From positions 25,978,001-26,042,000 of the forward strand of contig OZ260667.1 in assembly GCA_965285935.1 (NCBI GenBank): a DNA stretch of 64,000 nucleotides. Reading direction: 5' to 3'. Positions within the stretch are counted from its first letter, which is position 1, and every line of letters begins with the position of its first letter. Below are positions 3,875 to 60,559 of the stretch, piece after piece. This stretch comes from Ophelia neglecta (taxonomy: Eukaryota). The notes below the pieces were generated by a model. It searched no databases. It saw only the letters and a list, made by a program, of their open reading frames with translations, and had not been told where the DNA came from. A program made the position numbers and the translations under genes.

Positions 3875-4541
3875 TCACCTCCTATCACTTAGTGCCGTTT
3901 GAAAGTCACCGGTTAGTCCATTACTCGTGGTAGAGTTAGGCGATGCAGTACAGGGAGCAGGTGACAAAACCTGATCTGACAAGAGATCAGGACTTGAAGT
4001 TTTACCATGTAAAGTTTTATCAGCAACGTCACTCAGGCAGCCAGTGAGCTCTTGCTCTTTTGACTTCTGCAGTGGTGTTTCAGCTTTGAAAGTCTCGAAT
4101 GACTTTAAACCTTCATAGAGAAAGTGTTCACATCCATCATCTCCATCGTTGCTGTGGTGTGGCAGAGTTCTCGCAGCGCACTGAGGAACACATCGTAGAC
4201 TCTCCCGGCTGGCTGCGATGCTTTTACCCCACAAGTGATTCCCTCCTCCAACGTGACTGGGACGATCATCCGGGGTTGAAACACCGACAGAACCCAGGAT
4301 GATGTTGCTGGGACAGTCTTCACGGGATCCTGTGCCGTGCATTTCACAAATATCGGCGTAGTTTACGCAATTAGCACGGATGTGCGGAAGTGGCTTATTG
4401 AGCATCGGGAGTCTCTCTTCGTGGCCACGCGCAGACACTATCTGGTGCGATATGGTGTGGGTGTGGCCGTAAGGATCCTCCAGCACTTGTACTTTAGTTC
4501 GAGGTGTAGGCACAGAACCTCTACGACCATTCCTGAGGCGT
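3875..4541 (-). CDS. Paralog 1 exon 9: cytoplasmic tail
   Basis: Contains track ORF 3875..4513, extended to the tttgaag acceptor. Shares EDPYGHT, HEERLPML, YxDICEMH and SSPDL with paralog 2. Confidence 0.88.
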
Positions 4542-7500
4542 CTTCAAAGAAGAAGAATACCAAACAAAAATGATAATAAACACATAGCAATACAAGGAAA
4601 TCAACTCAATTTATAAGATATTATCAATATGAATAAAAATAACAATTATGTCAATTATGCATATAAATAAAGTGTCTTACGTTTTTATACGTGTGAATGG
4701 AGGTTTGCTAAGTAGGCCCTATCACAATATAATATACAAATAGAGTTATCGAGATATATGCGCATGCATGGCAATTTTTCCCGATGGACTGAGAAAAAAC
4801 CGAACATTATTTACCTTCTGATGAAAAGCACACAGAGAACCATGATTGCCATGTACACAACGATCAGCAGGGCCACGCCGAAAATAATAACTATCGACAT
4901 ACCTGGAGGAGAAAAATATAATGACAACATGCAAAACATTTTATATATTAACATTTATATATTTACTTCAAGGTTCAGCCACCGAGATAGAGCTACCGAT
5001 GCGACAACTGGTTGTGACATGAGGGCAGGGCTGGGAGACAGGGGTGAAATAGGCTACTCTTAGTATCCGTGTACCCACATATTTCCTTACTCGTCACGGA
5101 TCAATATTCAGCAACCAAACAGTCTCGTACAAAGTGAAAATACTCCGTGACAATGAGTATAGACCAGGCAAAGACCCGCAGTTTGTGAATAATGACAATT
5201 TGTAATTTACCATTCGAAATTACAATCAAACAACACTTATACCTGTTACTTGCATCCTAAATTGTCCCAGAACAAAGCTGAATTGTTTTTTTCTGTATTT
5301 TAATATGCATGATTATCTATATAAGGTCATTTGATAAAAAATGGATTCAGATATCATGCAAAAGGATTTTGCCATATTGTAAAATTACGTCAATTTGATA
5401 GAGTTAATGACACATCCTAAGAGAAATTTATACTAATTGACTCCACAGGTATGCATGGAAGTGTTCGTCTCATTTAGACACTAAGCAAATGCATTGTTAA
5501 TCGGAAAAAACGTGACATTAACACAAATCACGGAAAGAGGGGTTCAAATAGTATCGAAATACGTGATCAAAAGATGTCTCACCGTGTTTGTAATGATCAA
5601 CGCAGTACACTACCACAACTTAATACATGACATAAAACCGATGGTCGGGATAAGGACATATCGGCATTAACACGCACTCTCTGGACGGACTCTAATAAAA
5701 CTGCATCCAGCAAATAATACATTCAAAGTAATGCCATTGTACTTATGAGCAACTAAATTTAAAATTCAAAAACCATTAGTCAGACCGCCCAATATGAATT
5801 GTTTCTTCAACCTTTGCACAGTTACTGTAATTCTATTATTAAAAATATTTTCTTGATCGATATTCCCTTTAACAGGTATAAATGTACCAAATGTGGGAAT
5901 TTGAACTCCGCCTGGTACATCTCTGAATATTTCGGGCGTGTCATCTTCTAGAGTTTTCTCAGCAACTGAAAAAGAAACATTTAATATATAATTTGTTTAA
6001 AACTAATAAAGGGTTAGAAGTTACCAAACGACAATAATTAATATCATAATGATATGAAAATGGATGTTTTGGTTGTAATAGATCTATGAGTCATTCGTAT
6101 AGATTTTCATCTTTACTAATTTAAAGTCTGATTCTATCTGTACCGAACGGAAGGTCTTAACTGCGAGATGCGGCATGGCTTTAGCTTTGGAATACCCACA
6201 AGTTGCTTTTATTGTACCATACTATTGCATGAAGGTTATTCAAACCAACGGAGCCACAATAGGTAAGCAGAAACAGGCACTTTGTTGTTTTTGTAATTCA
6301 CCATTTTATTGAATCTGATACCATCCCTCAGTAAATTGATATCTACACATTGGCGCCATCAACACTGAGTGCACAGTTCCACCTAACACATACACAAATA
6401 TGTATTGTATATCGAACACATTGTAGTTACGGTTCATCTCAATGCTCCAAGCTGGCCTGAGGCAGATTGGAAGGATGAAAGTCACCGCGCAGTTGGTTGA
6501 GTTTGTTTGAAAAGCCACTAAATGAAGTTCATCCTATAACGGGCATTTAACTAAACTGTAGTCGAACCTGCTCAGCCTGCATGGAACAGTTTTTAATGTT
6601 GCATGCATCAATAGGTGATAATCTTATATTCGGGAACATTTTATTAAACCATACACCTATTGGCAAAGCGATAATTTATAGTCTTGCAATCAAAAAGGTA
6701 TTTCATTCAATGTTTCAAGGGACAGTTGCATAGTTCTAGTTATTTCTACGGTGTCATTGTTAATGAATTGATTTAATTTTAGGAAGGCAAGCCTACCTTC
6801 CTCGTGAAGGTTGTCCGCTTGTAATTCGATAATTAATTACACCCAGTGTTTTTTATATTTTCATAGGTTTACAACTACAATAGTTGGACTGGCAAATTCA
6901 CAGTATAAAAAAGTTAAATAATCAGTAACAATTAGTTACTCACCCAGGTGTGAGCAGTTTTTGAGGTCACCGATCCACTCATTATTCCGACATCTGAGCA
7001 AGAATGACTCTCTTGTGGCGTTACATGTTATAAACAAAGCGTCGTCTTCCTGTCGGGAGTATGTCCCGTGTGGTAACGGAATGACTGGACAGCCCACTAC
7101 TGTGAATCAATAAAATAATAAAGTATGTAACTCTACACTCATAAATAATCTATTGTCTGATAGTGATGTCTTTAGACAGTGGTCTGCTGGCCCAAGACTA
7201 TTAGTTTCAAGGCTGGGCAGTTAGATTTTGCCTAAACAGGAGCAACATTTTCCTCTGTTTGCCTAATTATCATGACCTGCACGGGCTATTAGATTTTTTT
7301 GGGATTGTCCACCACTGATATAAGTATTTAGTCCAAGTTGTAAGTGAAACCATATGGTTGTATCAGAAGCAACATGACATACCTTGATACTTGATAAGGA
7401 ACTTCGCAGACTGTGTAGCGACAAGTCTAAGGTTGACTTGGCTTGTCCGGGAAAAGTAGATATGTTTCACTCTAGTCTCCCCGCCGCATACTGTGATACT

Positions 7501-10500
7501 GTTACCAATACGAGGCTCTTCAATGATGGCGTACTGCTGACAGAACTGACGGCTCCGGCTGTAAACGCTACCTGCAAATAAGGACAATATCCAGGGCAAA
7601 TAAGCAGGTTATAAAAAAAATGTCCACCCCACACAAAAGCAATTTTCTGACATCGAAACTTCACTCCCCCTCCTCCCATCAACATATTTTATGGATTATG
7701 TTTGGCCTCATAATCCCAGGGGCGGGTCGCTAAGAACCATGACCTTGCGTCCGAGCCTATGGTTACTGGTATGCTCCGAATGTTTTGACCCCATTTGTGG
7801 CATTCTGTATATTTTATGATCATTGGAACATTCTTTCTTTTAAGCCTCCATTTTCTGACTGGAGGCAAATTTCGTCGGGTGCGGGTATGCTCCAGAGGTT
7901 TATAACAGTTAATTTCGGCCAGAAAACGACCCGCTCGCAATTTGGTTCAAGTCCGTTTCGAGCGCACCCCAGTATCGTGAATATGTTTTTGTGAACTAGG
8001 TATACAACTACGAAAGCAACCGCAGTTTAGATCCGCACTTTTCGAATTCTTTCCGATCATTTATAACCAACATTTTATGCTTCCCAAGTCTTTTACGCCC
8101 TCCATTTTAGTTTGGTACAGATGTTTAAGTGTCAATTTATTTCCTGCCATGGAGCATACCTTAACAAAAGGCCGCCCAATGCGGAGAGGGTACTACTTAG
8201 AATAAGACCACCTGAAAAAAAACGACACACAGCCACGTTCTTCAGGATAAATCTTAAACTTACCGTTTCCTAAAGAGAAATCAATCATTGTGATGTTGAT
8301 TTTTTGACCTGGGGGAAAGGAAAACTCGTAGACACAGTGATGGGATCCGGGTGGGTGGAGTGTACTCGAAATGTAACCAGCTGCAGTTGTGACATTGTAA
8401 CGTCTGTTTCGCCTGCACACAAATCTTTGAACTGGAAACCAAGAAAAACAGTGCAAAAGATTTCTGAAAAATCAAAGTACATAACATGGAGAATGTCGAT
8501 TATTCTAATCGTATTCTGCTTTACCCACTGCAGATATAATTCGAGCCTGACCTTTGACACAGCTGTAGTCGGCTTCTAGGTAAGAGGAAAAATCCAGAGG
8601 ACACGGTTTGGTTCTCACCAGAACTTGGTCGGAGACACTCAATGCGCATCGCTGTCTTCCGGAACAAGCCTCGTCCAACTGACTTATCACGTCTTTGGAA
8701 CAACCCACGTGACCATAGTTCCGCGTTACGCACCTTGATAATACAACAGAATACATTCATGTATGTGATAAAGTAATATCAGATGTATAAAGTACATAAC
8801 TGGTCGATGAAAGAAATGGACAAGATAAATTAGAAAATGGTCAAAGACAGGCATGGGAACAAATGACAACCACAAACCAAATTCATTGTAACCTTTTCAA
8901 TGCGAATGTTTACTAATCTGACATCCATGTCTATCTACACCTACCTGCCTAAAGCTATGCGACCGAATCGCGCATGCTCCATGACAATAACCTGACCCCC
9001 GTCACATCCGGCTGAGAAGGATTCCGTCACACAGTACTCGTTACAAGCTGTAAGACAAAGTTCCAAAATGTACAGTCTGATATGTTTTCTCAACGTAAAC
9101 ACAATATTGGTTAAACTGTTGTATTGAATGAAATAACTTTGCTTTACATAGTAATCTTGTGCCTAAATTAATAATAAAAGAGAAAGTTAGGCGTCAATAT
9201 TGAATTTTATAGAAACAAACTGCATGGCTTCAGCCTTACTGGAACTAAGTTACATCAACATTAAATCTAGTGAAGCCTGAGGGTCAATGGACTTTGGGCC
9301 ACTAAGAAACCCCCTTTTGCCGTGTTGTTTAGGTAAAAGTTCCTTCTTTTTAGTAAAATTTGTCCAATCTACCAATATCTTGTGGTGTGGTTTGGTTTTA
9401 TGCCAAACGACTTGTAAAATGTAAATCCTTTCTATTGGTTATCGTATATAAGATTGTAGTGTTTGAATTTATCAAGTTGGCCTTTACTAGCCGTCCATGT
9501 ACAACTATTTTATATATTCTATAACATTGGTTTTCCATGTATTGTAACCTACTGGCTCCATACATTTTTCGTGATATCATGCCTCGGATATACAATCCTA
9601 TGCCTACAATATCTTTAATTAACAAATAGGTGTAGCTCTGCATAGAATAATATTGGGAACAGTCTGCGGTTTTGAGAATTGCCCACCCACAATCAATACG
9701 TCTCTTTGATTTAAGGTTCATTACCAATTTGGCAAGCACCTGTCATCGATTGAGCTAATACCGGACGGTTTTATTTGGCTCAATCACCGAGCAGAGATTA
9801 ATGTTGATATGAACAGCTTCCTTTCACATCTACCCGCTTGAGCCGTTTATGAAAACATCGACACGAGTTAGGCAAATTTTGCAAATGACCATCATAAAGG
9901 CAACATTCCAGAAAATTAGCATTTGAAAAGAAATAAGAATCGTCGATAAAATGAATAAAAGAATAAGGATAATTCAAAGTGACAGTAATATAGGGAGCAA
10001 TTTAAATATGAAGGCCAGGAAATTGGTAAGCACCGTTTTTCTTTCTGGATCAACACATATGACTTGTTTGAAATACATTGGCAGCGAACTCCGGAGATGC
10101 ACTTGGAGATGTCAATTGACGCATCTGACGAAACGTTCTCGAATATTCGCGTAACTTATACTTGTTCGGTGATTTCCCGGCGGAGTAATATTTCTCAGCG
10201 TCATGATGATAAGACATATTTCGTGCAAGGATACGACTGGGTCGGCTTCTTGGTGGGAAACTGTCAGTTAAAGATCCGCCATTGACAGGGCAGACGGCAT
10301 ATCGCCTCCCACATTATACAAAAGACGACACCATTTCAAGTGAATAACATTGGCGAGACACTTTCCCGCAGACGACAAAGAGTGTCTGGAAACACATCTG
10401 CAATCGTGACAGTTATATACTGTAAATCCCTTATATTTCGCGAGTCTCTCATTTCGCGAAATTAGAAGGCTCGCGAAAATGACAGGCCAAGTGAGGACCA

Positions 10501-13500
10501 AATGAGGATGCCTCAGGACGCAAAAATTAGGTGCAGCGAAATAATGTATTTACCAAAACCGCCAACTTTCAAGGCCACGAAAATAATGGGTTTTTACATT
10601 AGTACTGTGCAAGCCTAACGCAGGTATATTGATTGGAGTAGAACTTTTTCGTGAAATGTACCAAACTTCACTACGCTGGAAAAATTTTCTGCATTATAGA
10701 TGTTCATATTCGATTCTTGGAATAGGCGCCACCACTTAGAAAGAATACATTTAAGTTTATCCTGGGAATAATTATTTAAATTGTATTTTAGTTCTACAGG
10801 TCAGGGAGGTCGTGACGCCATTTTGCCCCTCCATTTTAAGTAAAAATTTAAAAAAAAGTCAACATTTGAATTGTTTTCATAATCGGTATGAGGTCCTAAA
10901 TAGAAGACATAACTCAATAACATGAAGAAAAACAATGGGTAACCAGGTATCTTTTCCCAAAAAAACTGTCTAATCAAGTAATATCCTAAAGTATATAAAA
11001 TAGCGGATCCATGGCTAATTTTTCTCATCTTAACAATATTTTATATTAGTAATTGAAAAATAATGGTGACCCACTGTTTTCATCAAGTTATTCAATTGTG
11101 GCTTTATATAGTCGTTTCAAATCTCACCACAATTCGACCATTGAAATTTTTGTCAAAATAAATGGGCTTAGAAGCCCAATTTAAAGTCATGACCCCTGAT
11201 TGTATTTCAGGATTAAGGATTTATTTCAAAACAATATTCCCAACCAAGGTCTTTATGTAATATACCTGCGTGTAGAAAGCCAACTTAGTTTTAACTTTTC
11301 TAAATTGTTGCCCCTATTTCATGAAGACATGGTGGACAACCCCCTTAAGATCTATAATGGCTAGCAGTGTTGCTGTGATGGAGATTTAATTAAAAAACGT
11401 ATATGGGAAACTAAAAAACAATTAAATTTATAAAATTAATAACACCGGTAAACTACCTACCAAAATCTTACATAATAGTGAGAAATGAAGGGATCGCTAA
11501 AGTATTGAACCCAATTTAAAAAGAAATCCTAGTATATATCAAGAGTTATGTTATTTCACAATCTTGTTGTACTCAGAAAACAATAAATGTAAAGCCTCAC
11601 CTCCTCCCCCCCCCCCCCCCCCAAACCCATACCCCCACTGTGTTGGCATTCGTCTGCCTAAGCACAGCAGGATTTGCAGCTACTCGGATTACACGGACGA
11701 GTCACTGATGATGGCAATGGGATTCCTGCCCTATTGTGTCCCCTATTGAGTAGAACGCTTCTTGTCAGGCGAAACCCCTCGAACCCTGCTTTTGGAATGA
11801 ATCCTAATGGATCCACCACGTTTTCTCATTTACGGACGAATTACGTTACGTTTGAGTTTGCCATTCAATGCCAGTTCTATTTAGTCAGATTATTGAGCCG
11901 CTGGTACTGACCTTGTAAAGACGACGCAGCTGGGCGATAATAAGTAATGCTCCTTTGTGAGCCCCCAGTAAGCCTAGAAGGCCTTAATTTTGTAGGAACT
12001 GTTTGAGTTTGTTTTGTTATATAAACCAAAAGAACTAGCGCTTGACATCACTTGGAGTTTTGTAGATGTTTTTAAACTATAAAGCTAAACTGTTTGTCAA
12101 CCATTAGTCATGTTGGGTCGGTTTCATCAAAGATGTGACCTCCAGAGAAAACACCTGAGGGACCTCTGAAAAGTCACTTCTACTTACAAGTCGGCATTGC
12201 CGGAAAAAATCATCGATTGTAGTGGTAGGAGTAGGGTTACACAAGAGTGACATAAACAACAAGGTAAACTATTAAATATCGGTATTTACAATTTAGTTTT
12301 GATATTAGTCATTTTATAGAAGTAGAGTAGAAAACTGTCTACCACTTTGCGCTTTCTATGTAGGTTTACATATAATGTTATTTTTTAATGTATGGATTTT
12401 TTTTTACAAATAATGCTATTTTAGATTTACAAATAATGCTATTCTTTAATGTATGAATTTTTAAATGTATGAATTTTGTTATTATTGTAAATTGCACAAT
12501 CCATACGGATATTACAGCAAAGGCAGTGCAAAAATTAGCATGCGAATATGATAGGTGAGTAATAAAATGGTTGAGAGTCAGGATGGCTGGTAGTACTTCC
12601 TCTACTTACGAAATTCGGAAGTTGGTCAAACGGGTGCACCGATAAATCCATCCAATGCTATTTACAACTTAATACTGCTGTGCAGGCCTAAATATACATT
12701 ATATCAAAGTGGCCATGGAAACCTTAATAACTTAAGGATATTTTCTTTTACGCCGATTTTAATACCACCCGGACAAATATTCCTAGTATGGAGAATATTA
12801 ATAAAGTCATTGTCACTGCGAATGCAAGGAAGTAGCTCGTGGTCTTATCCGATGGGAAATTGTGTTCATGGGACGCTGAGAAAAAATATATGGAAGTCTT
12901 TTTCTGCAAGGAACAAGGTTAATCATTTTCACCAGGTAGTGTTGTGCGCGCAACAGGATTTGCTAAGTAATTTCCGTGCGATCGGGCGCAAGAGAAAAAT
13001 GAGCTGCCCGGATAAAGACGCCTTACCGGTGGCGACTAATTGGCTTTCGTAGTATGTCAATATGCTGGCGTGTGAGCGTCCATGGATCAATGTCTGTCGA
13101 TGGCAGCCGACAAAGGCGTTGAGAGGGGCGAAGAAATTGTTATGGAATATATAGGTCGGATGTTAACTTTCGGCTTAAATGGATTGTATTTAAGAGTCTG
13201 TTCTTAAACAGGTATTGCACTTACTGAAACTTTTAGGCCTAGTAGGGGGAACTAGGGTTAGTTCACTTACATTATGTCAAATGTCAATGGGTAAAGAGGA
13301 ACAGAAACAGAAACATGATTAAATAGGTTTAGCAAACATCAGCTATAGTCATTAAATAATCTTCACCATGTAATTAACGATTATCAATTGAAAGAAGACT
13401 TTTTTTTTATTCCGCTCAATGTGGCCTAATTTCGCTCATGACGTACATAGCATTTCTTCGGTCGTGGAGCGAAGGCAAATAAAGGGTGCTGGCATAATAA

Positions 13501-16500
13501 TTAACAGGTCAACTAATTATTTTCATATATTTCATCCAGCCTGTTAAAATAATAAAACCCCGAACTTTGTATCCCAGACTAACATCCTGTTTTGATTGTG
13601 AATTAAAATTTCGATATAGAGATATATAACAGTTCAACGTTTGTTTTCCCAACTCAGCCAAATAGACTAACATCTTGATCAAATTGAGTCCTCTTTTTTT
13701 CCTTTTTGAGGTGGTAGCTACAAAACTGCCTAAAAAGAATTACAAATAAATAATCGTGATCCTGCGGGTTTACAGCTAAAGGTCATGCCATTTCACTCTT
13801 TAACAAAAGTATGTTTTCATTTGAATGGTGCTTGCAAAGAGGTTTCTTCAGACATCGAGAGCCTAAGGAGGAATCACAGTCCGAGGACTAGTCCATTTGC
13901 TCCTAATCGTTATCTTTTGTAAAACGCCTACTGAAAGAAATTGGTGCTCTCAATTACTGCCCTTCTCTCGAACCATTAAAAGCATTCAATAGGTCGACAA
14001 CTTGCTACTGTATATCTCCTCTCCGGCTTCTCCCTTTTCCTCGTGTCATCCTTCACCACAAATGCTAAACAATCCCTTCGATTAAATCTCTGTTTCTGCT
14101 CATTGTAGTTTGTCTTCTCTGGATCCTCTTCCCTCGCCAGTTTCAGACTTATAATTTTCTAGTGGTACCTTTCTAAATGCTGATAACTCGTACTGGCATT
14201 TCACCGACTCTCCTTTAATAGAATCTGCTACCTCGTACTGTCCATTCTCTGACTCTTCATTGTGAGAATCTGCTACCTCGTACTGGTTTTTCTCTGACTC
14301 TTCTTTGTTAGAATCTGCTACCTCGTACTGGCCATTCTCTGACTCTTCCATGTTAGTGTCTGCTTACTCACACTGGACTTTCTCTGACGATTCACTTTAG
14401 AATTTGCTACCTCTTACCATTCTTTGTTAGTGTCCTACCTAGTACTGACTTTTCACTGACTCTCCTATGTTGAAATCTGCTACCTCGTACTGGCCTTTCA
14501 CTAACTCTTCTTAGGCAGCCTCAACTCACTATTAAACAGGACGCAATTATATGGTTATTTATCCAACTAACCCTTACTGTCTGAACAACAAAACAAATAA
14601 AAACAAAGGAAAACAATGAAACCATTTACCTTGCCACCCTCAAGCCCTTCGCCCCGCCTTGTGGTTAACAGGAAGTAAGACCAAAATTCAGCTACTAGTA
14701 GCGTTCACTAGTTAGTAAACCACAATAGCTTCGAGAAAACGAATTCTAAGCGGTAGCCAGTGACATTTTTCGGTGGAATTTAGTCTATGACCGAAATTAC
14801 CCCACTTCCAACTGCACCTGTTTTATACTTGATTGGAACTGATCATTGACTTAATTGAAATCGCTTATAGCAGCTAACAACAACAAAAGTAGACATGTGC
14901 ATTCCAAAATTTTAAAATGGCGCTGTCACAGTGTCCTCTTTTATTATTTAGGACAACATGAAATGTTGTTATGATCGTAATTTCGTGTAATAGACAGACG
15001 ACATTCTATCCAAATGATACTAAGATCTGCTTCTGTATTGCATTATCTGCAGTAGAGGGCATTTGTTAATTCCTGTCATCGTCCCCATTTAGGAAAGGAC
15101 AAAAGCTTGAACGTCATAAGTTTATCTGACCAAATGCCAAATCCTCACCTAAAGTCATAACTCTCAAACCAATAATTCAATTTACACCCAGATTAACAAG
15201 TAGTGTTTTGAAAAGGTTAATTGATAATATAAATGTATAGAATGTTGCCGCAAATGATTGGTAATAACAGAAATAAATCCTATCGAGAATTCTGGAGTTT
15301 GAAAGTTCAGTTATTTTGAATTTTATACATGAAGTGAGTCCCCAAAGTTTGGTGATGGTAAATCCTACTTCTGGGTACACCCCGGAGGCATTTTTGACTG
15401 TATTTTAGTATATGTTTATCCATGGTTAAAATGTAGCCTCTGTTTTTATGCTATGTCCATTGGTATTCAGGATAAATAGAGTGTAAAATCTTAATAAATG
15501 AATACATACACTAACAGACATGCAGATATACACAGACATGGGTGGATACATCAATCATAAGACAAAACAATGACAATATTTCCCCCGAAGAAAACTATCA
15601 TAATAACGAGTCGTCATCTCTGTTTGCAAAGTCAAAAACATTTAAATTAAGTTATTCGCATTATTGTTAATGGGCATTCTTTCCTTAATAGTAATGGGGT
15701 GTTGCCTAAAACCACTATTTAAATGATGAACCGTTTTGTTTCATTCGGAAGTAAGACTAAACGAGAAAGCTTCAAGGGCGTCCGTAAAGGGGGCATTTCT
15801 TCAGTAGACTATGATATTTCTTGATCAAGTTTAAGTTATCTCCCCAAACACATTAATTCATTTAATTATTTATCAATCGTGAAATTCTGTAGATACCCAT
15901 GATCTAATATAATAAAAACAAATAAAACTGTCTTCGCCCAAGGTCAGTAATATTGTCAATTATCAAGGGAAATAATGGTGTCATCGAGAACTGTAATGTG
16001 ATAACGAGATTGGTTTAAACGAAGGGCATCATTTGATCAGATTCACAAAAGAACTTCAGCAGAAGTCTTCTCCTTTACAACATTGAGCAGATTTTGAAGA
16101 TTGCCCCTTCCACTAGTTCAAATTTGCACAAGCAGAGAGAGCCCTAAATCGTTTAGTTGTCTGTCAGAAGTTCTCTGCGCTTAAAGGAGCTCATTGTTAC
16201 ATTGGTAATGCGAAACATACTGCGTTAACTTAGGCGTTGGTTTTGGACATATTCAATGGCAAGGAAAGCGACAAATTCCATGCGTTGATAGGTCTCTTAC
16301 ATTGTTTCATGTCGTTTTCCTTTTTGCAAATAACTTGTTTTTTGGTGTCAAGGACGCGCACCAACAGAGGCAAGTGATTATATTTACAAAGCAGCTAGTT
16401 TTATTTCACCGAAACACGAACCGTTCACTGCGTATTTCATGAACATGTGCCGACTAATGCCAAATTAAACTTTTTCTACAAACCTGATAAAAGTAAATTA

Positions 16501-19500
16501 TGTCTGACTTAATCTCGATTTCATCTCGAAAGTTTCGATTAAGTGACTTTTTTCTCCAAATTTAACCAGAAATACTCTTTAAGAGCTTAACTATAAAAAC
16601 GTTTAATGCGTAACTTTTCTAAACGAGTTTCTTGATTGCAACTATTTTTGCAACTTTTTTCTAGGTAGGCCTATGTTGCAATATTCACAGTTCTTTTATA
16701 AATGAGTGTCTTTATATAATAGGCACGATTCATCTGGGCAACTAAAAGTACATCTATATTATGTCCCTAGTCTAACTGCACAACCGTCTATTCTGTAAGA
16801 GATCATCAAGGTCGTGCCCAATCATTCTTATGCTCTATCACGATTATATACGTTATACTGGGAGTATTTATGTTGGAATTTTTCAGCGATTGTCCGTGTT
16901 AAAGAGAATAAATAATCAACTCATGTTACCATTAGCCGTGAAATTCCCCCCTAGGGAGTCAGCTCGGACAGTATCGTGTTGCAAATGATCGCTTATCGCT
17001 GGCTTACATGTAAATGGGACAGACAAATGCTAAATTGGGGAAAACTGTACCTACAACTGATACATTAAAATAAACGCCTTTTGTTTTCCACGAACACTGA
17101 TGATTGTGGTATAGAGGATTCAGGGTCAGATTTGGTCGGAGGCCGAGTGATTAGGACCCTCTTTTTGGAAGGTCCGATATCCTTACTTTAGAAAGAGGAG
17201 GGTCGGGTTTTAGTTTGTTGAGTGGACTCTCCCGACCACTTACTCCTGTAATTATCATCCCTATTTCTAAATCCTTGGCTGCACGCCGCAAAGCGTTTAC
17301 AGATACAGCTTTAGCTAGAAATCCCTTAGAAGAGAAACTCGTTTGCTGTAGCTTAATCACCCTATTCATTTTGATAAGTACGTTTAAAGTTCTACTATAA
17401 CTAGGTAAACAGAAAGGAAAAGGTGCAAGACGTGAATCTTAATATCTATCTACAGCCTGATTAAGCTCTCATTTTGTGCAACTCTGCGCGGAATCATTTG
17501 TTATGTCCATGCAGTGGCTAAACGTAGATGAGACCGTCATTATAAGAATCAAGAAGAATTATATCATATTTGGTATATAGTACAGACAAAAACGACACAC
17601 AGCATAACGAACACAACTAGGCCTGTATAAGGGACTTTATTGCACACTAATCAATACTTCTAAAATGCCCAGTTTAAAACATTGCCAGCCCCAAACTCGA
17701 CCAATCTCTCAATTCAAGCTGATTCGTAGTTTCCTAGTCCCCTTCATCTGTTTACTTTGATCCATTTGTCTCTTCAGGGGATATTGATAACATTGCAGCA
17801 CAGTCATTTGGAAGCTTTACTGCTATGAGTAGTTCTGAACGTATGACTTGACATAACGAATGCATGTCGTGCTCCGGTCGGGGCTCAGGATGTTCGCTTC
17901 TGTGTTGCCGGGCTCCGGGTGCAAAATGTGATTACAATGTCATCTTCGCCACGAGACCCACAGGAATCATTTGTATTCGTGTGAGGCCCCTTTGATATGA
18001 CTTGGAATTGATAATACGCTTGTTCATGGCTTGACAAGACGACAAACTAGGCCCCACCGAGAAGAATATTGGCAATACCGAATGTATTAGTAGCAAGGTA
18101 TATAATAAAGTTCTAACTTAGGCCATTTGCCCAACCAAATAATCATTTTGACGATAAGACAGGGACATGGGGTGTGATTGATATGGATAAATGTGTGGTT
18201 CCGAAATTTGGAAAGTCGAAGAACCACAGCTCGACAGTCGTGATTTCACAAATGAAAAGGTTAAGAGCCCACCACTGGGCCAGCATTTTGTAGGCTAATG
18301 TCAACTTCTAAATTCTCGAGTGTCAAAAAGGACGCAGCACGTGAATTGTTTGCAGTCGCACCAAAAACTAATGCTTTGAAGTAGAAGTTAGCCTATCTCA
18401 AATAAGGTGTTGAGTGGTCAATACTTATAAATGTTATGTTAAATTAATCTTTGATCTGTTTAAATTTCGAATATTAATTTTTGTAGGTTCATTCGAATTC
18501 AGTAGCCTATACTATTTGTTTAGGGACCATGCAACAATGAAATGCCATCAACGTTCGAAGTAATTTTAGTCGAATACGAGCTGCATGTATTATAGTTTGA
18601 CTGGCCGTTTGTGCGGCTAATTATATACGCTCTCCAAAATAATAAGTAAGATAATTGGTTTGCGGGGATCAGCGTATTTCAAGCACATATCCCCTATGTG
18701 TTTGTACAATGCCCGTCATGAAATAACAAGTAACATTATTTAAGCCAAAAGTTATGGAACTGAATCCACATCGATTTTTTTCAATTTCAAATTTCAATTT
18801 CAAAAAAGTAATCAATAATACAATCAAATACTTTCGATGGATAAGGGTTCACTATTAAATATTGTATTGTTATCGCCCAATCGTTTTTACGCAAGTATCT
18901 GTTAATTAGGTGAGGGGGGGGGGGGGTGAAGGACTGGGGTTTCATTGTTTGATGATACACTATTGCGATGCATAAATTATCATATATTAATCTTAATTAA
19001 CACATATCTTAAAAGTTAAACCCTTATTGATTAGTAACTTAGGGTGTTGAAATAGCTTACCAACTTAAGATGTAATGTCACGGATATAACCGATGGCACA
19101 ATTAGCGTATCTGTGATCTGACACCAAGGTATTCGCTTCTTGTCATCCTCATTGATGCAAATGTCCAAGACACGGGGTAATATCACTACTATTTAATACC
19201 GCCGAACAGGCCGTGCCTAGAAAGGTCATTTTGCATGCAACCAAGTCAATATCCTAGGAAAAAACATAATGGAAACAACCTACGATTTTACTACTATTAC
19301 TGCACAATCTTAAGGCGTTTCCCTCAGCTTCATTCGTTAATATCAATAATACCAGGGCGTTTTAAGTACAGCCATGCTAAATGGGGGTAACCTTCTTGAA
19401 CATGTGAACTACAGTTTCAGAAGTGGCCCCTAGGGCTTTGGAAAAAGGCCACGTTTTATATTTTGCCTTTTTAAGAAAGCCACAATACCTGTGTAGCCAC

Positions 19501-24322: not shown

Positions 24323-24351
24323 CTGACGGACACTAATTTGATAGAGCCAGT
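24323..24351 (-). promoter_or_regulatory. Conserved non-coding block B upstream of paralog 1 (candidate core promoter/TSS)
   Basis: 27/29 identity to 61286..61314, in the same order relative to block A and exon 1. Confidence 0.7.
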
Positions 24352-24467
24352 AACGTGCCGTGACTTTACCGGGCGGTGCCACAGGCGGTCGCACGCTAGG
24401 CTCCACAGTCCCACAGCATCCCCACGCTAGTCTGAGCTGTACTACGCTTTTCCCTTACAGAGCTATT

Positions 24468-43230: not shown

Positions 43231-43891
43231 TCATCTTTGAGCTGCTGCCGACTCGGGAAGTGTCACCGTCAATCGGCCAGGGTTTGGTGAGGTCACTGTA
43301 ACAGGAATAATATTTGCGCCAGGATCATTTGGCACTAGATCGGGGCTGCTACATTTCCCGTAAGGGTCTTCACTGCTGTCGACCTGTCGGCAGCTTGACT
43401 GTACTTTCGGCTTGCGCAAAACTCCTGGGCGAGGGTCATCAACCCGGAAGGACCTTAGTGATCTCGAGCTGTCGTAAACGCGGTTGCCATCCAACTCGCC
43501 GCAATCGTGGTCAGCGTTCACTGGAATTGTGTTGATGATATTTCGACCCCCTCGGAGATTCTCTTGACTGGTTGCTACACTGTGATTGCACAGGGCCCCA
43601 GCCAAAGAACCAGGACTTACTGCCTGACCAGGCCCAGCCACAGAACTTCCCCTGATGAAGTTGCTATGGAAACCCATGCAAGAACCAATCTCATGCATTT
43701 CACAAATATCAGTGTAGTCTCCACCACTTGCCCGGAAGAGCGGCTGGGGCTTGCCGAGCATTGGAAGTCTCTCCTCATGGCCATGGAGCATCTTGGAGGA
43801 GATGGTACGCGTGTGGCCATAAGGGTCCTCCACCACCTGGAGTTTGGTCTGGGGACTAGATACCGAGTCTTGTCCCCGCCGTTTGCGACGT
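43231..43891 (-). CDS. Paralog 2 exon 9: cytoplasmic tail
   Basis: Within track ORF 43231..43926, tttcag acceptor, RRKRR stop-transfer, motifs shared with the paralog 1 tail. Confidence 0.88.
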
Positions 43892-46800
43892 CTGAAATAT
43901 GAATAATTCATAAACAAATGATTCATGAAGCAATAGACGTCAATTAATAGCTAGATAGAGTTATTGAAATGCATCTTGATTAAAAACCAATTGGTCAAAT
44001 AATCAAATTCACCAAATGTATATCATTCTAACACAACACTGAAAATTTGTGCTGAGTTCGAGATAATATACTTGTTAGAATGAAATGTTTTTTTTTGCAG
44101 ATGAACATTCATGTAGGAGATTGAGTAATTTAATTAAAAGATAGATATAACATATTACCTACCTTCTTATGAACATCACGCAAATGATCATAATGGCTAT
44201 ATACACGACGATCACCAAGGCAACGCCTAATATAATAACCAATGAGATACCTGAGCAGAAACAGAAGAACAAGCCATTAGCATTTATTAATGCATAACCT
44301 CAATAAATTTACGCAAATTATTTCTTATATATTTGTTATTTACTATAATGTTAACTCTTGTTAATAAGTTTTCTGATACGCACTTTTGTATTGAATTTTT
44401 GTTAAAGACACTACTCACTACAGTGTTTTATTTGCAAGTTAGGAAAAAGGAACTGTCAAAACGAGGACATTCACTTAGCTAATTAAACTTATTGGATATC
44501 TGAAAAAAGGAACAGTTGGCAAATGTGGCCAAGAAATCTTTAACTATTTTCATTATCCCAGTCGTGGCCAATAGTGTGACACGGAGCCTGGCGTCTTCTT
44601 TGATGCTTACTTCATGTTTCAAGGTTAGATATGCATACCTGACAACCTTCACGGCGTTTGGGGATTATTTTTCGTAATTATTGAAAGTGTTATGCATTTG
44701 GGTTTTTGGTAATTCGCACGTGTGGCTCATAGCTAGGCAGATGAGTCAAGCCCAAACATGGAGCCACCAAAAAGATTGTTAAAGACACGATACAGGACCG
44801 TAATAAGAACATAATACGGATTAGATTATTCATAGACATGCTTAAAACTGCTCGTTACCAATTGGTTTTAAGTGACCTGTCACATCAGAGGTAGCATTAT
44901 GTATATCTCGGATGTAAGACAGAAACATAGTCTTTAATATTAAGGTAGGTAAGACAAAGGTCCTCAGTGTGAAACTTAGGCACATACCTTTATGTATAAG
45001 TGTGCGTTAAACATATGGGAATAACTATTGTTATCACACCAAAGACGATGGCTCATCTACGGTGATAAGTTATATGCACCTTACGTGACGTACAGGATAG
45101 AAAGACGAGTTTCAAAATTGACATGACTACCCGTAGGTGGTTGTTGTTTATCGATCGCCACGAATTTGGATGAACATTACTCAAAACGAAAAGAGAGCTC
45201 GAGATACTGCATCTTCTGACGGAATTTAGTGGTGAAATACCCAGCATGTAAGGGAGAGTTTATAACGATTTTTTTTAATTCCTGTACCTATGAGTGTTTT
45301 TTTGTCTTCATGGCAATATATATGTTGAAAGCCCTTTCGGGGCCTACTCGCAATATGGGCTAAAGACTAAATCCAATCCAGTAACATTCCCTAGATAGAT
45401 GTGGAATTTAAAAAAAAAACTCCATAGTATTTCATAGTAAACAATGTTCACATAGGACCATGGCATAAAATTCTACTATATTGTTCTGGAACTTTGGGTG
45501 GGAGAATATCTAGCTTGCTGGCAAATACGCCCGAAAGCTAATCACAGAGGAAGTGGAAGGGGCATAATTATTTAGTTTTACCCTATTCGATGAGTAACAC
45601 ACCACAACAAGAAACCCATTTCTAGCTAGCTTGCGTAGGATACCATGTGACAATTAAACAGTGGGCAAGTCTTCTGGATGAATTATCTTTCACATTTCAC
45701 ATTTGCTTAGCATTGTCCGTCGCGTTCTCATTTCAGTTTATAATGTGGTATGGGGTATCTATTTGTTCTTTAAAATAAAAAAATTGTTGTTCACTGTTTT
45801 TAATATTGAAATATTTGTCAAATACATTCTATTTTTTTTAAAGCGATGGTGTTCTTAAATCTTTAAATAGTGCTTTGCCTGTAGGCGAAAAGAAATTGGT
45901 ATTCACCTATTGGAGGCAATCCTCCAAATGTTTCTTCATTTGACGAGTCCTGCGGTTTTTGAAGTTTGGAATCAGCTGAAAATAAAACAATAAAATAATA
46001 AGTTCTTGGAATAGCTGTTCACTAGTCAGTATTGCACAAAATCTAAATATAAACACTGGCTCAGGAATCCACCAAAGTGCTTTCACCTCTGGTGCTCATC
46101 AAGCAATACTCTCGTCGGGTAGGGTTTCCAAACGAGGCTATGAGGTCGACAGAAACTAAACAATGGAGGCTAATATTCAATCTCAATAGAGACAAATGGT
46201 GTTTTATTCTAGCTAGCACGGACATTCCATTAACCATTATCCGAACAAACACTTTTCAAAAGCAAGCATTTTTATAGTCTGAGACCCAGATCTCTTTCTC
46301 CACACATTGACTTATAAATCAAAGCACAGAATAGAGATCAGTTTACGCCTCATGGCAATCTGTATTAAATAAACCCGAGACAGTGTCAGAGCATTGTACA
46401 CCTCCCACTCCCTTGGTGGTAGTCTCTCTTTTGATATCCGTGGCTCATTAACTCCGTTTTGTTCGGGACACTGGTTCTCCTTTCTATGTATTGATCAGTT
46501 AATTAAAAGAGTGTATGTTTGATTAAGCACACAGTTGAGCGGTACTACGTTTGCCACAATTGTATTTCACATTCCGTTGGCATGTGTAGTTGATAGAACA
46601 AAGTCTGTCTGACACTTTTGTGGTATCGAAACTTGATCATGTTATCCAACAGACAGAGGTCATCGCCATCAACTGTTTGTATTAAATTTCTTCATAATCA
46701 TGATGGCCATATTTAAGCGAGCAAGCAGTAAAAATATATCAAAAATGCCTCAAAATGAAATAATCCTTAAAGCTACAATTGGTGTAATTTGCTCGTTTTT

Positions 46801-49800
46801 GTTGAATGTTTCATATGAAAATATTACAGTATAATGCTATTTCTGTACTTTTCGTTTGACGAAATACAGTCGTAACATGTGATCAATACTAAAATCATTC
46901 AAGTAACCTAATAATATGACTTAGGTTTACATAGAATCAGTTGCAACATTAACACAGTAGGGTAAATCAAGTGATACTCACTTGAAATGGAGCAGTTTTT
47001 GACTTCTCCGACCCACTCATGATTCTGACACCTGAGCAGGAAAGACTCTCTGGAGACATTACAAGTAATAAAAAGGGCGTCATCCACCTGGTTTGAAAAG
47101 GTGCCATCTGGCAACGCAATGTTCGGACACCCAACAGCTGGAAATAGGTACAAAATAATATTCTGCATATGATATGTTCATGTCTTGTACTTTTAGTGAT
47201 ATTAATAACATGCTCATTCTGAACAGAAGTCTGGGTTTGAATAAAACCTTTTTCAGGTATAAAGAATGTATCAATCCTTAAAAATTCACCTTCTAAACTT
47301 TTGCAGAAATCTCTCAAGACTAACCTTGATATTTGATAAGGAACCTGGCTGACTCAGTGGAGACTAGTTTTAGCTTGATGTTGACTTGACTAGTCCGGGA
47401 GAAATAAATGGCTTTCTCTCTCTGGTCGCCACCGCAAACTGTGATACTATTTCCAATGCGGGGCTCCTCGATGATGGCGTACTGTTGACAGAACTTCAGG
47501 TGCCGATCGCCATATAAACTCTCTAAAAGGGTAATAAGGATGACATTTGTAGTTGGTACGATAATCTTCACACACTACAACTGTAAATAGATATTAATAT
47601 ATTCAATGGAACATTTTTATTGGTAAGCTTAGAGTAACAGTTTTCATATCGCAACACTTACCGTTTCTGAGAGTAAAATCAATCAATGTAAGATTGACCC
47701 TTTGACCCACCGGAAATGACAACTGGTAGTCACATGTGTGAGAGTCTCTCGATGGATTTGTGCTCGATATATATCCTGTTGGTGTCGTGATAACTTGAGT
47801 TTTACTTTCCTCGCACGAAGAGGTCAGGACTGAAAGGGATACATAGTTCAACTCAGTTCCGTGCAATGCACATGAGCAGGTTATGGGAAGATTAAACCCA
47901 CAAAATAAAACATTTCACGAATAATTCATTGTTAATTGTTCTAAATGTGAAGTATTGGCTTATACATTTGAGGTCATTAATCTTCTTGAATAGTTCAAAT
48001 AAAATATTAGGAAAAAGGCCTAGTTGGGTAACAAATAGAAAATTTGTTTTTGATCCCGACCTTTAACACAGCTATAGTCGGCATCTAGATAGGAGGAGAA
48101 GTCTAGGGGACAAGGTTGAGTTCTAACCAGGACTTGGTCAGAGACGCTCAATTCACATCGCTGTCTACCGGAACATGCTGCGTCAAGCTGACCAATGACG
48201 TCTTTTGAACAACCCACGTTGCCATAGTTCCGCGTCGCACACCTAGTTAAAAGCAGCTTTTACTTTACTATTATTTTCCCTAGATTACGCTTGATAGACG
48301 AACCCCCAATAAATAATAAAATGTCGTACGTGCTGCACTATATTAATGACGCAGCCATACTTACCTGCCTAGAGCAATGCGGCCAAATCGAGCACGTTGG
48401 ACAACGACGACATGTCCGGTGTCACATCCGGCTGTGAAAGACTCGGTGAGACAGTACTCCATACCAGCTGCAATGGGGATCAAAAATATCATCAACACTT
48501 TAAGTCAAATTGAGGCTTATTCAAATACAAAAGCGTCCTTTTGCCTTTGATCAGAGAACTTAGTCTGATGCGAGAGCTTTATTGCCAAGAGTGTTAAAGT
48601 GTTTTAGGTTTAGGTCCCCATTTGATGTTGTTGTTTTTGCTTTAGACTAGACCAATAGTTTAATTACACCGAACTGCAGTCTGTGTCTTGTATCGGTGGC
48701 CATGTCAACCAATCGAAACCGGCGTGCCATCAGTTTGAATACAACAGCTCTTGCCTCTTTCTAGTTTAATCCTCTGGCAAAATAAGGACTGATTTGTATA
48801 GAAAATCGTTTATTTCCTGTTACACCTTTCCCCGGGAGTCTATGGAGTAAACATTTGCTCTAGCGCGGTAACGGCTTCGAATGCTCGCTCATCGATCTAA
48901 CTGACTGGTCTGAATTCTACCAGCAAATGAACTAATTAATGTTACAAAACATAGTGAATGGCAGGGTTTGATCCTAAAAACACCAGATATTTCACAGACT
49001 GAGAGAGACGATAGCATTTTTTATTAAAGTACACAGATGATTTATCAATTTAGGGGGGAAATCCAATGCAAAAACAAAAACAAAAAAGAAAGAAACTAAG
49101 ATTCAAGCTGGCAAGTATTTGCCTTCATCATCGTGTCTTTGGTGTCGATGCTCATGAAAAGGCAAGCGATACATCATCGTTCAATTGAGGATTTATATCA
49201 TTTTTAATGCCCAAGGTTACCTTGAACTAAACATAAAACTTAAACGAGCACAGTGGCTCTCAATGCCGCGATTTCCCAGCGGAGGCATTTATTTTACAGC
49301 TTCCTTGTTATACGCCTGAAAATGTTCATGGGAGTGATGAGGAAATGGCGGGGGAATGTTGTCGAAGTTCAAGTCATTGTCATTCTAGGCACAAAGTAAT
49401 CTCCCGCCATTGTCATCACAGACGACTCTGTCCCGAAGCAGACGAGATGTGACTCTCCAGAGATGAGCCAAAGTTTTTTCTTCTTATTTCACAAGGGGGA
49501 AGGGCAGATCGAAGTCAAAATCAATATTGACAATAATGCTGATCCCATAATTAGCTCTGGAGTTGTCATCAGCATTATCTTCGCAATGTTTACCTTTGGA
49601 AAGTAATATTGACGTAACAATAGTTTGTTATCTTTCGATGCACTTAATTTACCATATAACGGTTTCCGATTTGTTTTATTGTAAGTTATCTATTTCTGAT
49701 CATTTGTCTTCCAAAAGTTTACAAAGAACTTTTAAAATATTTAGATCTACGGACTAAAAGGTATGACCATTGTCCATAGAGTGTTAATATGCAAGAAGCA

Positions 49801-58800: not shown

Positions 58801-60559
58801 GGTGGTAGTATTTCATAACGATACACATAAAACAAACATCATGTCCATTCTGAGGAAGTTACGGCTGGCTGACGGTAAATACCCATCATGCAAGGATCCC
58901 ATTTACAGTATCCGAGATTCAAAAGCACTTAATTCCTATATGGGATCACTCAACCTTTATTTTGGCCGGTGCAAATCAATTTCAAGAGCCAACCATATGA
59001 CTGCAGAAGCAGTACATGACCCTAAGTATATCCCAGATGGAAAATTTGCACACGTGCCAAAGCGCAGAACTTTTTAATGGACATTTACAGAAATGTGTGA
59101 GGAAATAGGAAATTAAAAATAAAATAGACACCGTCGTCAAATACGAACGAAGCAGTCGGTGCCTCTGTCAGTGCAATTCATTTTTATTCATATCATACAT
59201 ATTTCAATATGCTTGATGAAAACAGGTGTCGTCTGTCTTATTATCACACCCTAAACCAACATATTGTAGGACCCACTCGATCAAAGTGCTGTGAGCTTCC
59301 TTTCTCTATTGATAACATTTGCTTTACAAACCAGAGGACACTATGTACAGTTTCCGTTTCCGGTATCGCACTGGATTGTGGGCAATGATCGATGGCGGCA
59401 CGTGACGTAGATCGCATTTTCTATAATGGGAAGGTAATTGCACAAACAAGTTGAAAGAGACCTTCTACAACATTGAAAAAAATAGTGTTAGACATGGTTC
59501 ATTTTGGTTATTTGTGTCACGGCAGAACAGTGCGATTATCGCAAGAAACACTATCGGTGAATGCACTCTCAACCGGGGTTCCGTTATCTCCTGCTTTTCA
59601 AGCCAGCTTCTCTCAGCAGCATTTCTTATACAGTTGTTTCCTGCCGTAGAATTAATTCGAAATTGCCTACTGATACAGCTGATACCCTCTTGATGGTATT
59701 CGCCCTCAACCCACTGTTGGTAGAATTCAGTCCCCGAAATTGCAGTCCTGTTGGAGGTAATTGTGCAGTGCCCTACCCAAACAAGGCCGATCTATATCAG
59801 ATCGATTATGTACTCACACCTTCTCCAGAGATCGATGAAAATATTTCATAGCTCATTATCGATGCTGCTTGGCCTGACACGATTCTATGTTACTATATAT
59901 TTGTGTAAAACATTATACAGGATATAAAGGAAAGTCGAAGATTTGGTACATTCTTATCGCTTATCGGTTGAACATAAATGACTTAAAAAACTGTTTGTTT
60001 CATATTTTGCATCCGTGCTTTCGGTTTGCTAGCTGCCCAGTGTTATTCAAATCTGCATATGAAGCAATTAAATGCGAATCAGCATTTATAACATGAAGAA
60101 AAATATCATTATACTCCCTTAATTATGAAAGCCCATGGTCATCTAAAATATATGGTGCATGGACGATATAACGGTGGCTGATTGGATGACTTGAAACGTG
60201 CATTTATTGACAAACAGTCGCATCGTATAAGACTGAAACGTTAATGAGGCTTCGCCATCGTCAAGATAATCAGAAATAATACCATTCCAATGCATAGTCT
60301 TCATTGCTTTATCCAGTATTTAAGGAGATTCATTTCTCGTCTGCAGCGTCTATTGCGAGCGATTTACTTCCACCTTCTGGCCTCTGCGATTGAACGCCTC
60401 ATTGACATGCCTAAAGAAGCTATTACTACAGTGGCGTGAGTAAATATCGCGGGATTAAAGCCCTTGACGAGACTTGGAGGAGTATTGTAAGTGACACTTA
60501 CCCGAGAGGCTGAAGAGCCCCAGAAGGGCTATGAGCAGAACACTTGGTCCTGACGTCAT
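43231..60559 (-). CDS. Paralog 2: spliced gene with the same architecture, ~560 aa; complement(join(43231..43891,44163..44250,45907..45975,46982..47137,47325..47522,47662..47829,48061..48242,48365..48467,60502..60559))
   Basis: Nine GT/AG-bounded exons give one open frame (1683 nt including stop). Phases are identical to paralog 1, and five internal exons have identical lengths (103, 182, 168, 156, 88 nt). Confidence 0.88.
44163..44250 (-). CDS. Paralog 2 exon 8: transmembrane helix (GISLVIILGVALVIVVYIAIMIICVMFIRR)
   Basis: gctcag acceptor, AG|gtaggt donor, 88 nt. Homologous to 4815..4902. Confidence 0.92.
45907..45975 (-). CDS. Paralog 2 exon 7: stalk (TDSKLQKPQDSSNEETFGGLPPI)
   Basis: ttttattttcag acceptor, G|gtgaat donor, phase 1-1, open frame. 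Ends GG..P as in paralog 1. Confidence 0.7.
   Translation of the reverse strand: MIPNFKNRRTRQMKKHLEDCLQ
46982..47137 (-). CDS. Paralog 2 exon 6: Sushi/CCP-like module
   Basis: ttccag acceptor, A|gtgagt donor, 156 nt. 36/52 aa identical to paralog 1. Confidence 0.9.
47325..47522 (-). CDS. Paralog 2 exon 5: C-half of CUB-like domain
   Basis: cttttag acceptor, G|gttagt donor, 198 nt. Homologous to 7383..7571. Confidence 0.9.
47662..47829 (-). CDS. Paralog 2 exon 4: N-half of CUB-like domain
   Basis: ctttcag acceptor, G|gtaagt donor, 168 nt. GYISST...CDYQLSFPVGQRVNLTLIDF. Confidence 0.9.
48061..48242 (-). CDS. Paralog 2 exon 3: C-half of SUEL lectin
   Basis: 182 nt, overlaps track ORF 48020..48217, SUEL Cys pattern. 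Confidence 0.92.
48365..48467 (-). CDS. Paralog 2 exon 2: N-half of SUEL lectin (AGMEYCLTESFTAGCDTGHVVVVQRARFGRIALGR)
   Basis: ttgcag acceptor, AG|gtaagt donor. 25/35 aa identical to paralog 1. Confidence 0.92.
60502..60559 (-). CDS. Paralog 2 coding exon 1: signal peptide MTSGPSVLLIALLGLFSLS
   Basis: ATAATG start with an in-frame TAG 5 codons upstream, hydrophobic core, perfect G|GTAAGT phase-1 donor. Homologous to 23793..23847. Confidence 0.85.

Follow-up and report, generated by a model that had tools for sequence, protein, structure and literature searches.

A tandem pair of predicted SUEL-CUB-CCP single-pass receptor genes in Ophelia neglecta

We analyzed a 64,000 nt window of the Ophelia neglecta genome, C12:25978001-26042000 (contig OZ260667.1) in the 762-Mb, 223-contig assembly GCA_965285935.1, in which two paralogous nine-exon genes, here called A and B, lie head-to-tail on the same strand. 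By sequence, A and B are intact and selectively constrained paralogs, and they are probably functional. The predicted products consist of a signal peptide, a SUEL domain, a CUB domain, a short CCP-like module, an acidic stalk, a transmembrane segment and a cytoplasmic tail. As no catalytic domain is present, a non-enzymatic surface receptor or co-receptor is the most likely function, and we favor, at somewhat better than even confidence, a non-catalytic receptor or co-receptor with an extracellular partner that is likely to be a protein. The initial annotation of this DNA had described a tandem pair of uncharacterized SUEL-lectin/CUB/Sushi single-pass receptors with tyrosine-motif tails and had interpreted them as a lineage-specific, tandemly expanded recognition family with candidate roles in neural wiring, self/non-self recognition or immunity; the observation is confirmed, and the interpretation is partly supported. 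Single exons or stop-free frames were used as queries in all searches and folds described below.

Results

Two nine-exon genes share one exon plan

The window DNA is of an AT-rich animal type with a GC content of 36-40% and contains no runs of N. When the two halves of the window were compared through all their stop-free segments, seven conserved segments emerged on the minus strand, arranged in the same order in both halves; nothing was conserved between the segments. Exon borders were read from the sequence, and the resulting frames were then checked by script. Gene A (minus strand, 23880-3875) has nine exons and 572 codons, and gene B (minus strand, 60559-43231) has nine exons and 560 codons. 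Both frames are uninterrupted, the introns are GT-AG throughout, and the junction phases are 1,2,1,1,1,1,1,2 in A and B alike. Gene A has a first intron of 14.7 kb and gene B one of 12.0 kb. B is located upstream of A, with about 19 kb from the B stop codon to the A start region, and the rest of the window contains neither additional exons of the family nor any other evident gene. Two complete head-to-tail nine-exon genes with identical phases, as annotated initially, were thus rebuilt from the sequence with intact frames; the outer coordinates of that annotation are also exact, since 3875 is the final base of the A stop codon and 60559 is the A of the B initiation codon. The exons are as follows, in window coordinates.

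Gene A exon 1, 23793-23880, minus strand: ATG at 23880 and a second in-frame ATG 11 codons further; signal-peptide-like hydrophobic core; donor gtaagt; ends in phase 1
Gene A exon 2, 8945-9047, minus strand: first third of the domain resembling SUEL/rhamnose-binding lectins (RBLs), with Cys1, Cys2 and FGR for YGR; ends in phase 2
Gene A exon 3, 8552-8733, minus strand: remainder of the SUEL/RBL-like domain, six Cys; Pfam SUEL_Lectin E 4.4e-6
Gene A exon 4, 8264-8431, minus strand: N-terminal half of CUB; Pfam CUB E 1.2e-3
Gene A exon 5, 7383-7571, minus strand: C-terminal half of CUB
Gene A exon 6, 6944-7099, minus strand: short CCP/sushi-like module with four Cys, a conserved Trp and two N-glycosylation sequons
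Gene A exon 7 (least certain), 5888-5965, minus strand: acidic stalk exon with a weak donor, gtacat
Gene A exon 8, 4815-4902, minus strand: predicted transmembrane segment, then basic residues of stop-transfer type; ends in phase 2
Gene A exon 9, 3875-4541, minus strand: predicted cytoplasmic tail of ~221 aa and stop codon; motifs EDPYGHT, ERLPML, (V)NYADICEMH and SSPDL
Gene B exon 1, 60502-60559, minus strand: ATG at 60559; signal-peptide-like segment; donor gtaagt; phase 1
Gene B exon 2, 48365-48467, minus strand: first third of the SUEL/RBL-like domain
Gene B exon 3, 48061-48242, minus strand: remainder of the SUEL/RBL-like domain; Pfam SUEL_Lectin E 6.8e-6
Gene B exon 4, 47662-47829, minus strand: N-terminal half of CUB; Pfam CUB 23.0 bits
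Gene B exon 5, 47325-47522, minus strand: C-terminal half of CUB
Gene B exon 6, 46982-47137, minus strand: CCP/sushi-like module
Gene B exon 7, 45907-45975, minus strand: acidic stalk exon ending in ...FGGLPPI; good acceptor tract and gtgaat donor
Gene B exon 8, 44163-44250, minus strand: predicted transmembrane segment
Gene B exon 9, 43231-43891, minus strand: predicted cytoplasmic tail of ~219 aa and stop codon

Exon 1 of gene A is 73% identical in DNA to the exon 1 region of gene B. The stalk exon of gene A (exon 7) is the weakest element of both models: it may end at 5912 with a GC donor, or it may be skipped, as joining exon 6 to exon 8 keeps the frame. In its support, a short acidic exon ending in '...GG(L/V)..P..' is found at the same place in four paralogs, among them B and the two further copies C and D described below.

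Long-term and present-day constraint act on the same frames

Protein identity between A and B over exons 1 to 9 is 50, 70, 88, 45, 79, 71, 26, 71 and 46%, and no similarity was detected between the flanking introns of the two genes. The ratio of nonsynonymous to synonymous substitution rates (dN/dS) between A and B was counted exon by exon and summed over the exons. The sum over all exons is 0.14, with synonymous sites saturated (dS > 1). Exons 2, 3, 5, 6 and 8 range from 0.05 to 0.14, exon 3 standing at 0.05 and exon 5 at 0.07. The fastest-evolving exon of the ectodomain is that of the N-terminal half of CUB (8264-8431 in A and 47662-47829 in B; 45% identity, dN/dS 0.32), which is a candidate specificity region. 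This exon also lacks the near-invariant 'CPW' of the family, for which A has CVY and B has CDY.

DNA contigs from three public runs of one sample were compared with the reference, yielding a list of 40 differing sites. Ten variants fall in the exons of gene A, eight of them synonymous and two conservative (Q>H and M>I), and all four indels among the listed variants are intronic. Eight synonymous changes in ten compare with about 25% expected by chance (binomial p ~4e-4). The dN/dS values and the present-day variants together indicate that long-term and present-day constraint act on exactly these frames. By these measures, the A/B pair is old (dS > 1) and evolves under purifying selection; it is not a fast-diversifying array.

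The SUEL domain has lost the sugar-contact residues

Exon 3 alone matches the Pfam family SUEL_Lectin (PF02140) in both A (E 4.4e-6, profile positions 31-80 of 80) and B (E 6.8e-6, positions 23-80 of 80). The scores of 27.4 bits for A and 26.8 bits for B are below the cut-off of 31.4 because only a partial domain was scanned. In the PDB, the best sequence matches of exon 3 are the rhamnose-binding lectins 5h4s (9.4e-7) and CSL3 (2e-5). Column by column and without overlap, exons 2 and 3 together cover the SUEL domains that paralogs encode in a single exon, and the intron is placed after '...G(R)'. The two exons contain 3+6 cysteines in A and 2+6 in B, in keeping with the SUEL pattern of eight conserved cysteines in about 95 residues.

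The carbohydrate-recognition domains of sugar-binding RBLs have the motifs YGR, DPC and KYL (PMC10817417). In the RBL domain of latrophilin-1, the sugar is contacted by the Glu that follows the first Cys, by the Tyr in YGR, by a Gly in a loop and by the Lys in KYL, and each of the substitutions E42D, E42Q and K120R abolishes sugar binding (PMC2430599). RBL domains attached to receptors, such as those of EVA-1 and PKD1L2, often do not have the sugar-contact residues and have been argued to bind non-carbohydrate ligands (PMC2430599). The sugar-binding motifs are not present in A/B, which read FGR for YGR, KPC/QPC for DPC and SYL for KYL. The residue following the first cysteine is Val in A and Leu in B instead of Glu, and the Lys of KYL is changed to Ser; A and B also read K/QPC...L, and all four sugar-contact positions are replaced in both genes. 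Since these contacts are replaced although the SUEL exon is the best conserved of all, its conservation points to a non-sugar, probably protein, ligand. For A and B, 'lectin' is probably the label of a fold and not of a function. In the 'SUEL-lectin' of the initial annotation, the SUEL domain is upheld by the Pfam and PDB matches, while the lectin is not, as the residues needed for rhamnose or galactose binding are all lost (PMC2430599).

CUB and CCP-like modules complete the ectodomain

Exon 4 of B matches Pfam CUB (PF00431) with 23.0 bits, above the cut-off of 21.4, and exon 4 of A scores just below it with 19.5 bits. Exons 4 and 5 tile the single-exon CUB domains of the family and contain 2+2 cysteines in A and in B. 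Among these single-exon domains, 11 of 21 match Pfam CUB (best 1.5e-6), and a search with the family CUB profile retrieved a cubilin CUB at 1.5e-3. For the CUB fold, the modeled sequence was that of a family member with its CUB in one exon, instead of A or B. This AlphaFold model has a predicted local distance difference test score (pLDDT) of 84.6, and its top Foldseek matches are the CUB domains of spermadhesin, TSG-6, MASP-1, Neto2 and neuropilin with a probability of 1.00; BAI3 was matched as well.

Exon 6 is a phase 1-1 exon encoding a short module of 51 residues, in which C3, C25, C36, W41 and C48 are invariant across 20 family exons. One of 20 family exons matches Pfam Sushi, with an E-value of 0.15. 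The AlphaFold model of exon 6 from gene A has a pLDDT of 84.7, and when it was compared with 48,161 representative chains by a method independent of Foldseek, nearly all of the first 43 rows were CCP modules (Z 3.8-5.3, root-mean-square deviation ~2.4 Å, 48-51 of 51 residues). The matched modules include those of SPICE, CD55, MASP-2, C1s, the E-selectin short consensus repeat, CD46, beta2-GPI, factor H, GABA-B R1a and IL-15Ralpha; the Foldseek E-values taken alone are not significant (0.3 and above). The modeled fold and the cysteine pattern, not a sequence model, identify exon 6 as a short CCP-like module.

A predicted single-pass topology with a long cytoplasmic tail

The hydrophobic core of exon 1 reaches 11-mer means of 2.4 and 2.8 in the two genes. 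Exon 8 contains a hydrophobic 19-mer with a mean of 3.2 in A and 3.4 in B, followed by an Arg/Lys run (RRR...), and this is the sole such segment besides exon 1; no charged residue is found within it in either gene. N-glycosylation sequons are located mainly in the ectodomain exons, with one more in each tail. We infer from this arrangement that A and B are type I single-pass membrane glycoproteins. The order signal peptide-SUEL-CUB-CCP-stalk-transmembrane segment-tail given by the initial annotation was recovered, with Pfam for SUEL and CUB, the fold for CCP, and hydropathy for the signal peptide and the transmembrane segment.

The tail of about 220 residues is probably disordered. No Pfam family was matched by the tail of A or B at E <= 1. 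The tail exon of A had no match among 1.84 billion protein representatives or in the ESM Atlas, a negative that carries little weight, since comparable tail exons located on foreign contigs went uncalled as open reading frames (ORFs). The tails of A, B and copy C have in common the motifs (E/Q)DP(Y/C)GHT, (E/D)ERLP(M/V)L, DY(A/T)DICEMH and SSPDL. There are three to four tyrosines per tail, two or three of which are conserved in the ~220 residues. In A, the sequence V-N-Y-A-D-I fits the consensus (S/I/V/L)xYxx(I/V/L) of the immunoreceptor tyrosine-based inhibitory motif (ITIM); B and C read G-D-Y-(T/A)-D-I, with Gly at position -2, and do not fit. The 'tyrosine-motif tail' proposed at the outset is weakened to these few conserved tyrosines, and an ITIM-type consensus is present in A only. 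The C-termini, ...SDRR and ...AAQR, are not of the PDZ type. Other members of the family have unrelated tails (BLASTP E >= 0.83), and a 'YE..KS..F' motif that A seemed to have in common with distant members was dropped at the same E-values.

A and B belong to a large family with orthologs in another species

A third copy, C, is located at about C12 26106600-26111200 on the plus strand, head-to-head with B and about 68 kb away. Exons 2-8 are present in C, and the tail is shorter, as the frame stops after ~150 tail residues; the first tail Tyr is replaced by Cys (DPCGHT). Exon 2 of C gave the impression of being broken in tblastn, which was rejected because it is intact in the correct frame. The fourth copy, D, resides on a different chromosome (C5 ~104743700-104749000, plus strand) and has its SUEL and CUB exons split in the same way. 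The stalk exon of D shows an apparent GC-AG intron with the donor gcaagt. All of A, B, C and D have the extra introns that split SUEL and CUB, and most family members have SUEL in one exon and CUB in one exon, followed by a CCP-like exon. In a tree built from 67 columns of the C-terminal half of CUB, the A-D clade has 97/95 support, a long stem and the order D,(C,(A,B)).

A genome search with the CUB exon gave 265 first-look candidates, and 56 of the 150 scored reach E <= 1e-10; the CCP exon gave 51 matches. The matches are mainly on C1, C2, C5 and C12. From these counts, the family is estimated to comprise at least about 50 genes and probably over 100. The earlier suggestion that the pair is part of something larger is thus borne out by the third copy ~68 kb away, the fourth on C5 and at least 56 strong CUB-exon matches.

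Contigs from ENA, NCBI, JGI and Logan also contain exon-sized ORFs that belong to the family. Two long ENA contigs of another species have SUEL, CUB, CCP and tail in this order and are 63-69% identical to particular members in O. neglecta.

ENA ERZ25069296 ctg23349, 9454-11947: family gene of another species with the same exon order
ENA ERZ25069296 ctg22389, 8541-19197: family gene of another species with the same exon order

One tail from the other species is 63% identical over 145 residues to a member here and keeps NNYYRTW(E/D)LQRHP and HIYESPKS. Distinct tail types thus appear to be conserved across species. In the tree, several family members pair one-to-one with copies of the other species, a pattern that conserved receptors fit better than a rapidly turning-over self/non-self system. 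The expanded array of self/non-self type envisaged in the initial annotation is weakened both by these one-to-one orthologs and by the purifying selection on A and B at dS > 1.

Exon 5 of A had no match in a word-indexed protein set or in JGI metagenome contigs, and the A-D subclade has so far been found only in this genome. The ESM Atlas clusters nearest to the family are eukaryotic, most commonly from Annelida. No description of a SUEL-CUB-CCP receptor architecture was found in the open-access full-text literature. On the literature and the domain evidence, the latter from exon-sized queries with a protein search covering lengths of 0.55-1.75 times the query, the SUEL-CUB-CCP receptor appears to be unnamed. 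This agrees with the original remark that it is not a named gene: the tail has no Pfam, PDB or protein-library match, and no open-access paper on the domain combination was found.

Noncoding blocks and repeats in the window

Outside the exons, A and B align only in two noncoding blocks 5' of the ATGs on the minus strand, at 24323-24351 and 24468-24545 in A and at 61286-61314 and 61399-61476 in B, with identities of 93% (29 nt) and 82% (78 nt). The blocks are 443-665 nt from the ATG in A and 727-917 nt in B, and the 30 kb of sequence surrounding each of C and D did not contain them. A promoter/enhancer common to A and B, or a noncoding first exon, might explain the blocks. Intron 1 of gene A contains three minisatellites, at 14180-14417 (unit 45/90 bp), 20414-20672 (27-114 bp) and 21055-21232 (40/79 bp). 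A 140-bp tandem repeat occupies 63421-64000 with 4.1 copies and 93% matches and continues past the right end of the window.

Discussion

A and B most probably work as non-enzymatic surface receptors or co-receptors. Their ectodomain of three modules would engage a partner outside the cell, and given that every sugar-contact residue of the RBL fold is replaced, this partner is more likely to be a protein than a free sugar. The tail may relay this binding by recruiting adaptors or sorting machinery through a handful of short conserved motifs, one or two tyrosine sites among them. As SUEL is nearly identical between A and B and the first half of CUB and the tail differ most, the two proteins might recognize a common class of ligand with diverged fine specificity or output.

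Several points weigh against this reading. The signal peptide and the transmembrane segment were called by hydropathy only (Kyte-Doolittle). Exon 6 of A and B has no match to Pfam Sushi (PF00084) at E <= 1, and its PDB profile search returned nothing significant, a CSMD1 sushi module appearing at E 9.3, so that the CCP-like module has a structural identity only. The tail is devoid of a recognizable domain and has just three to four tyrosines, and its motifs match no known docking consensus except the generic YxxI/L. Among the public sequencing runs, no RNA run contains the locus; the three that do contain it are represented by genomic DNA contigs, which are colinear through the introns and show no joints. 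The expression and all splice junctions of A and B are therefore predictions.

The architecture can be compared with several known systems. The soluble rhamnose-binding lectins SUEL, CSL3 and 5h4s have the same fold and the eight-cysteine pattern; they differ from A and B, which are predicted to be membrane-anchored, in being secreted tandem-repeat sugar binders with YGR, DPC and KYL (PMC10817417). EVA-1 of C. elegans and EVA1C of vertebrates are, like A and B, single-pass type I receptors whose SUEL is devoid of the sugar-binding Glu and Lys, and EVA-1 is a Slit co-receptor (PMC2430599). However, EVA-1 carries its SUEL domain as a tandem of two and lacks both CUB and CCP, whereas A and B have one SUEL and no EVA1-type tail domain in Pfam. 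The latrophilins (ADGRL, LAT-1) also carry an N-terminal RBL domain on a membrane receptor, and their sugar binding is weak or absent and their ligands are proteins (PMC2430599). In contrast to A and B, with a single hydrophobic segment and a stop codon ~220 residues later, the latrophilins have olfactomedin, hormone-receptor and GAIN domains and seven transmembrane segments. In the CUB2-CCP1 unit of C1r/C1s/MASP, a CUB is directly followed by a CCP as in A and B, and the CCPs of C1s and MASP and the CUBs of MASP and C1r are among the best structural matches; yet these proteins are secreted proteases with EGF and serine-protease domains and have no SUEL, transmembrane segment or tail. DCBLD1/2, CDCP1, neuropilins, NETO, SEZ6 and CSMD are non-catalytic type I proteins that bind partners through CUB, with or without CCP, and signal or are anchored through short tail motifs. 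They are not known to have a SUEL domain, their tail motifs differ, and only the generic CUB and CCP folds are common to them and to A and B. None of these nearest named systems has the architecture of A and B, which appears to be a new combination of familiar modules.

CUB beside CCP in a single-pass protein is a hallmark of synaptic auxiliary proteins. A and B might accordingly be auxiliary or organizer subunits like LEV-10, SOL-1, NETO, SEZ6 and CSMD, which cluster or gate ion channels or organize synapses, with the tail as an anchor. The Neto2 CUB, which ranks with the closest structural matches to the family CUB, the strong purifying selection and the cross-species orthology are in line with such a role, which we nevertheless consider unlikely: the CUB and CCP matches are generic and reveal no sequence-level relation to those families, none of which is known to have SUEL, A and B have no PDZ-type C-terminus, and 50 to over 100 members far exceed the size of known auxiliary-subunit families.

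Slightly less probable still is that A and B are true lectin-type pattern-recognition receptors, in which SUEL would bind rhamnose or galactose glycans of microbes or gametes, with the expanded family serving as a repertoire for innate immunity. In favor of this, both genes have the eight-cysteine SUEL fold, many invertebrate immune receptor families are likewise large and arranged in tandem clusters, and some distant members retain the Glu after the first Cys. However, A and B differ from the binding-competent RBL consensus at all four sugar contacts (PMC2430599, PMC10817417), the SUEL exon is the most conserved one (88% identity, dN/dS 0.05) and not a diversifying surface, and family members form one-to-one orthologs with another species.

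A bolder proposal is equally doubtful, namely that an undescribed spiralian (probably annelid) SUEL-CUB-CCP-transmembrane superfamily of more than 100 members would serve as a germline-encoded surface repertoire that recognizes cell identity, symbionts/pathogens or gametes. A, with its ITIM-type VxYxxI, and B, which lacks an ITIM, would then be an inhibitory/activating pair acting on a common ligand via their near-identical SUEL domains.

Finally, it is very improbable that one or both genes are unexpressed relics or that the nine-exon models are prediction artefacts: such a reading could draw on the RNA runs devoid of the locus, the weak donor of the A stalk exon, and the failure to find an ORF-level relative of exon 5 or the tail of A/B in public protein sets, but it is opposed by intact nine-exon frames with canonical splice sites in both genes, a dN/dS of 0.14 despite saturated dS, variants that are 8:2 synonymous with indels in introns only, and the same exon plan in copies C and D.

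A and B give clean, complete models for cloning and expression. The combination of SUEL, CUB and CCP on a single-pass receptor is apparently unnamed and unstudied, yet the family with this combination ranks among the larger receptor families in this genome, and at least one other species has kept orthologs of members. It would add another case of RBL 'lectin' domains turned into protein-binding receptor modules. If the family extends across annelids or spiralians, it would be a candidate for unknown surface receptors in immunity, symbiosis, wiring or fertilization.

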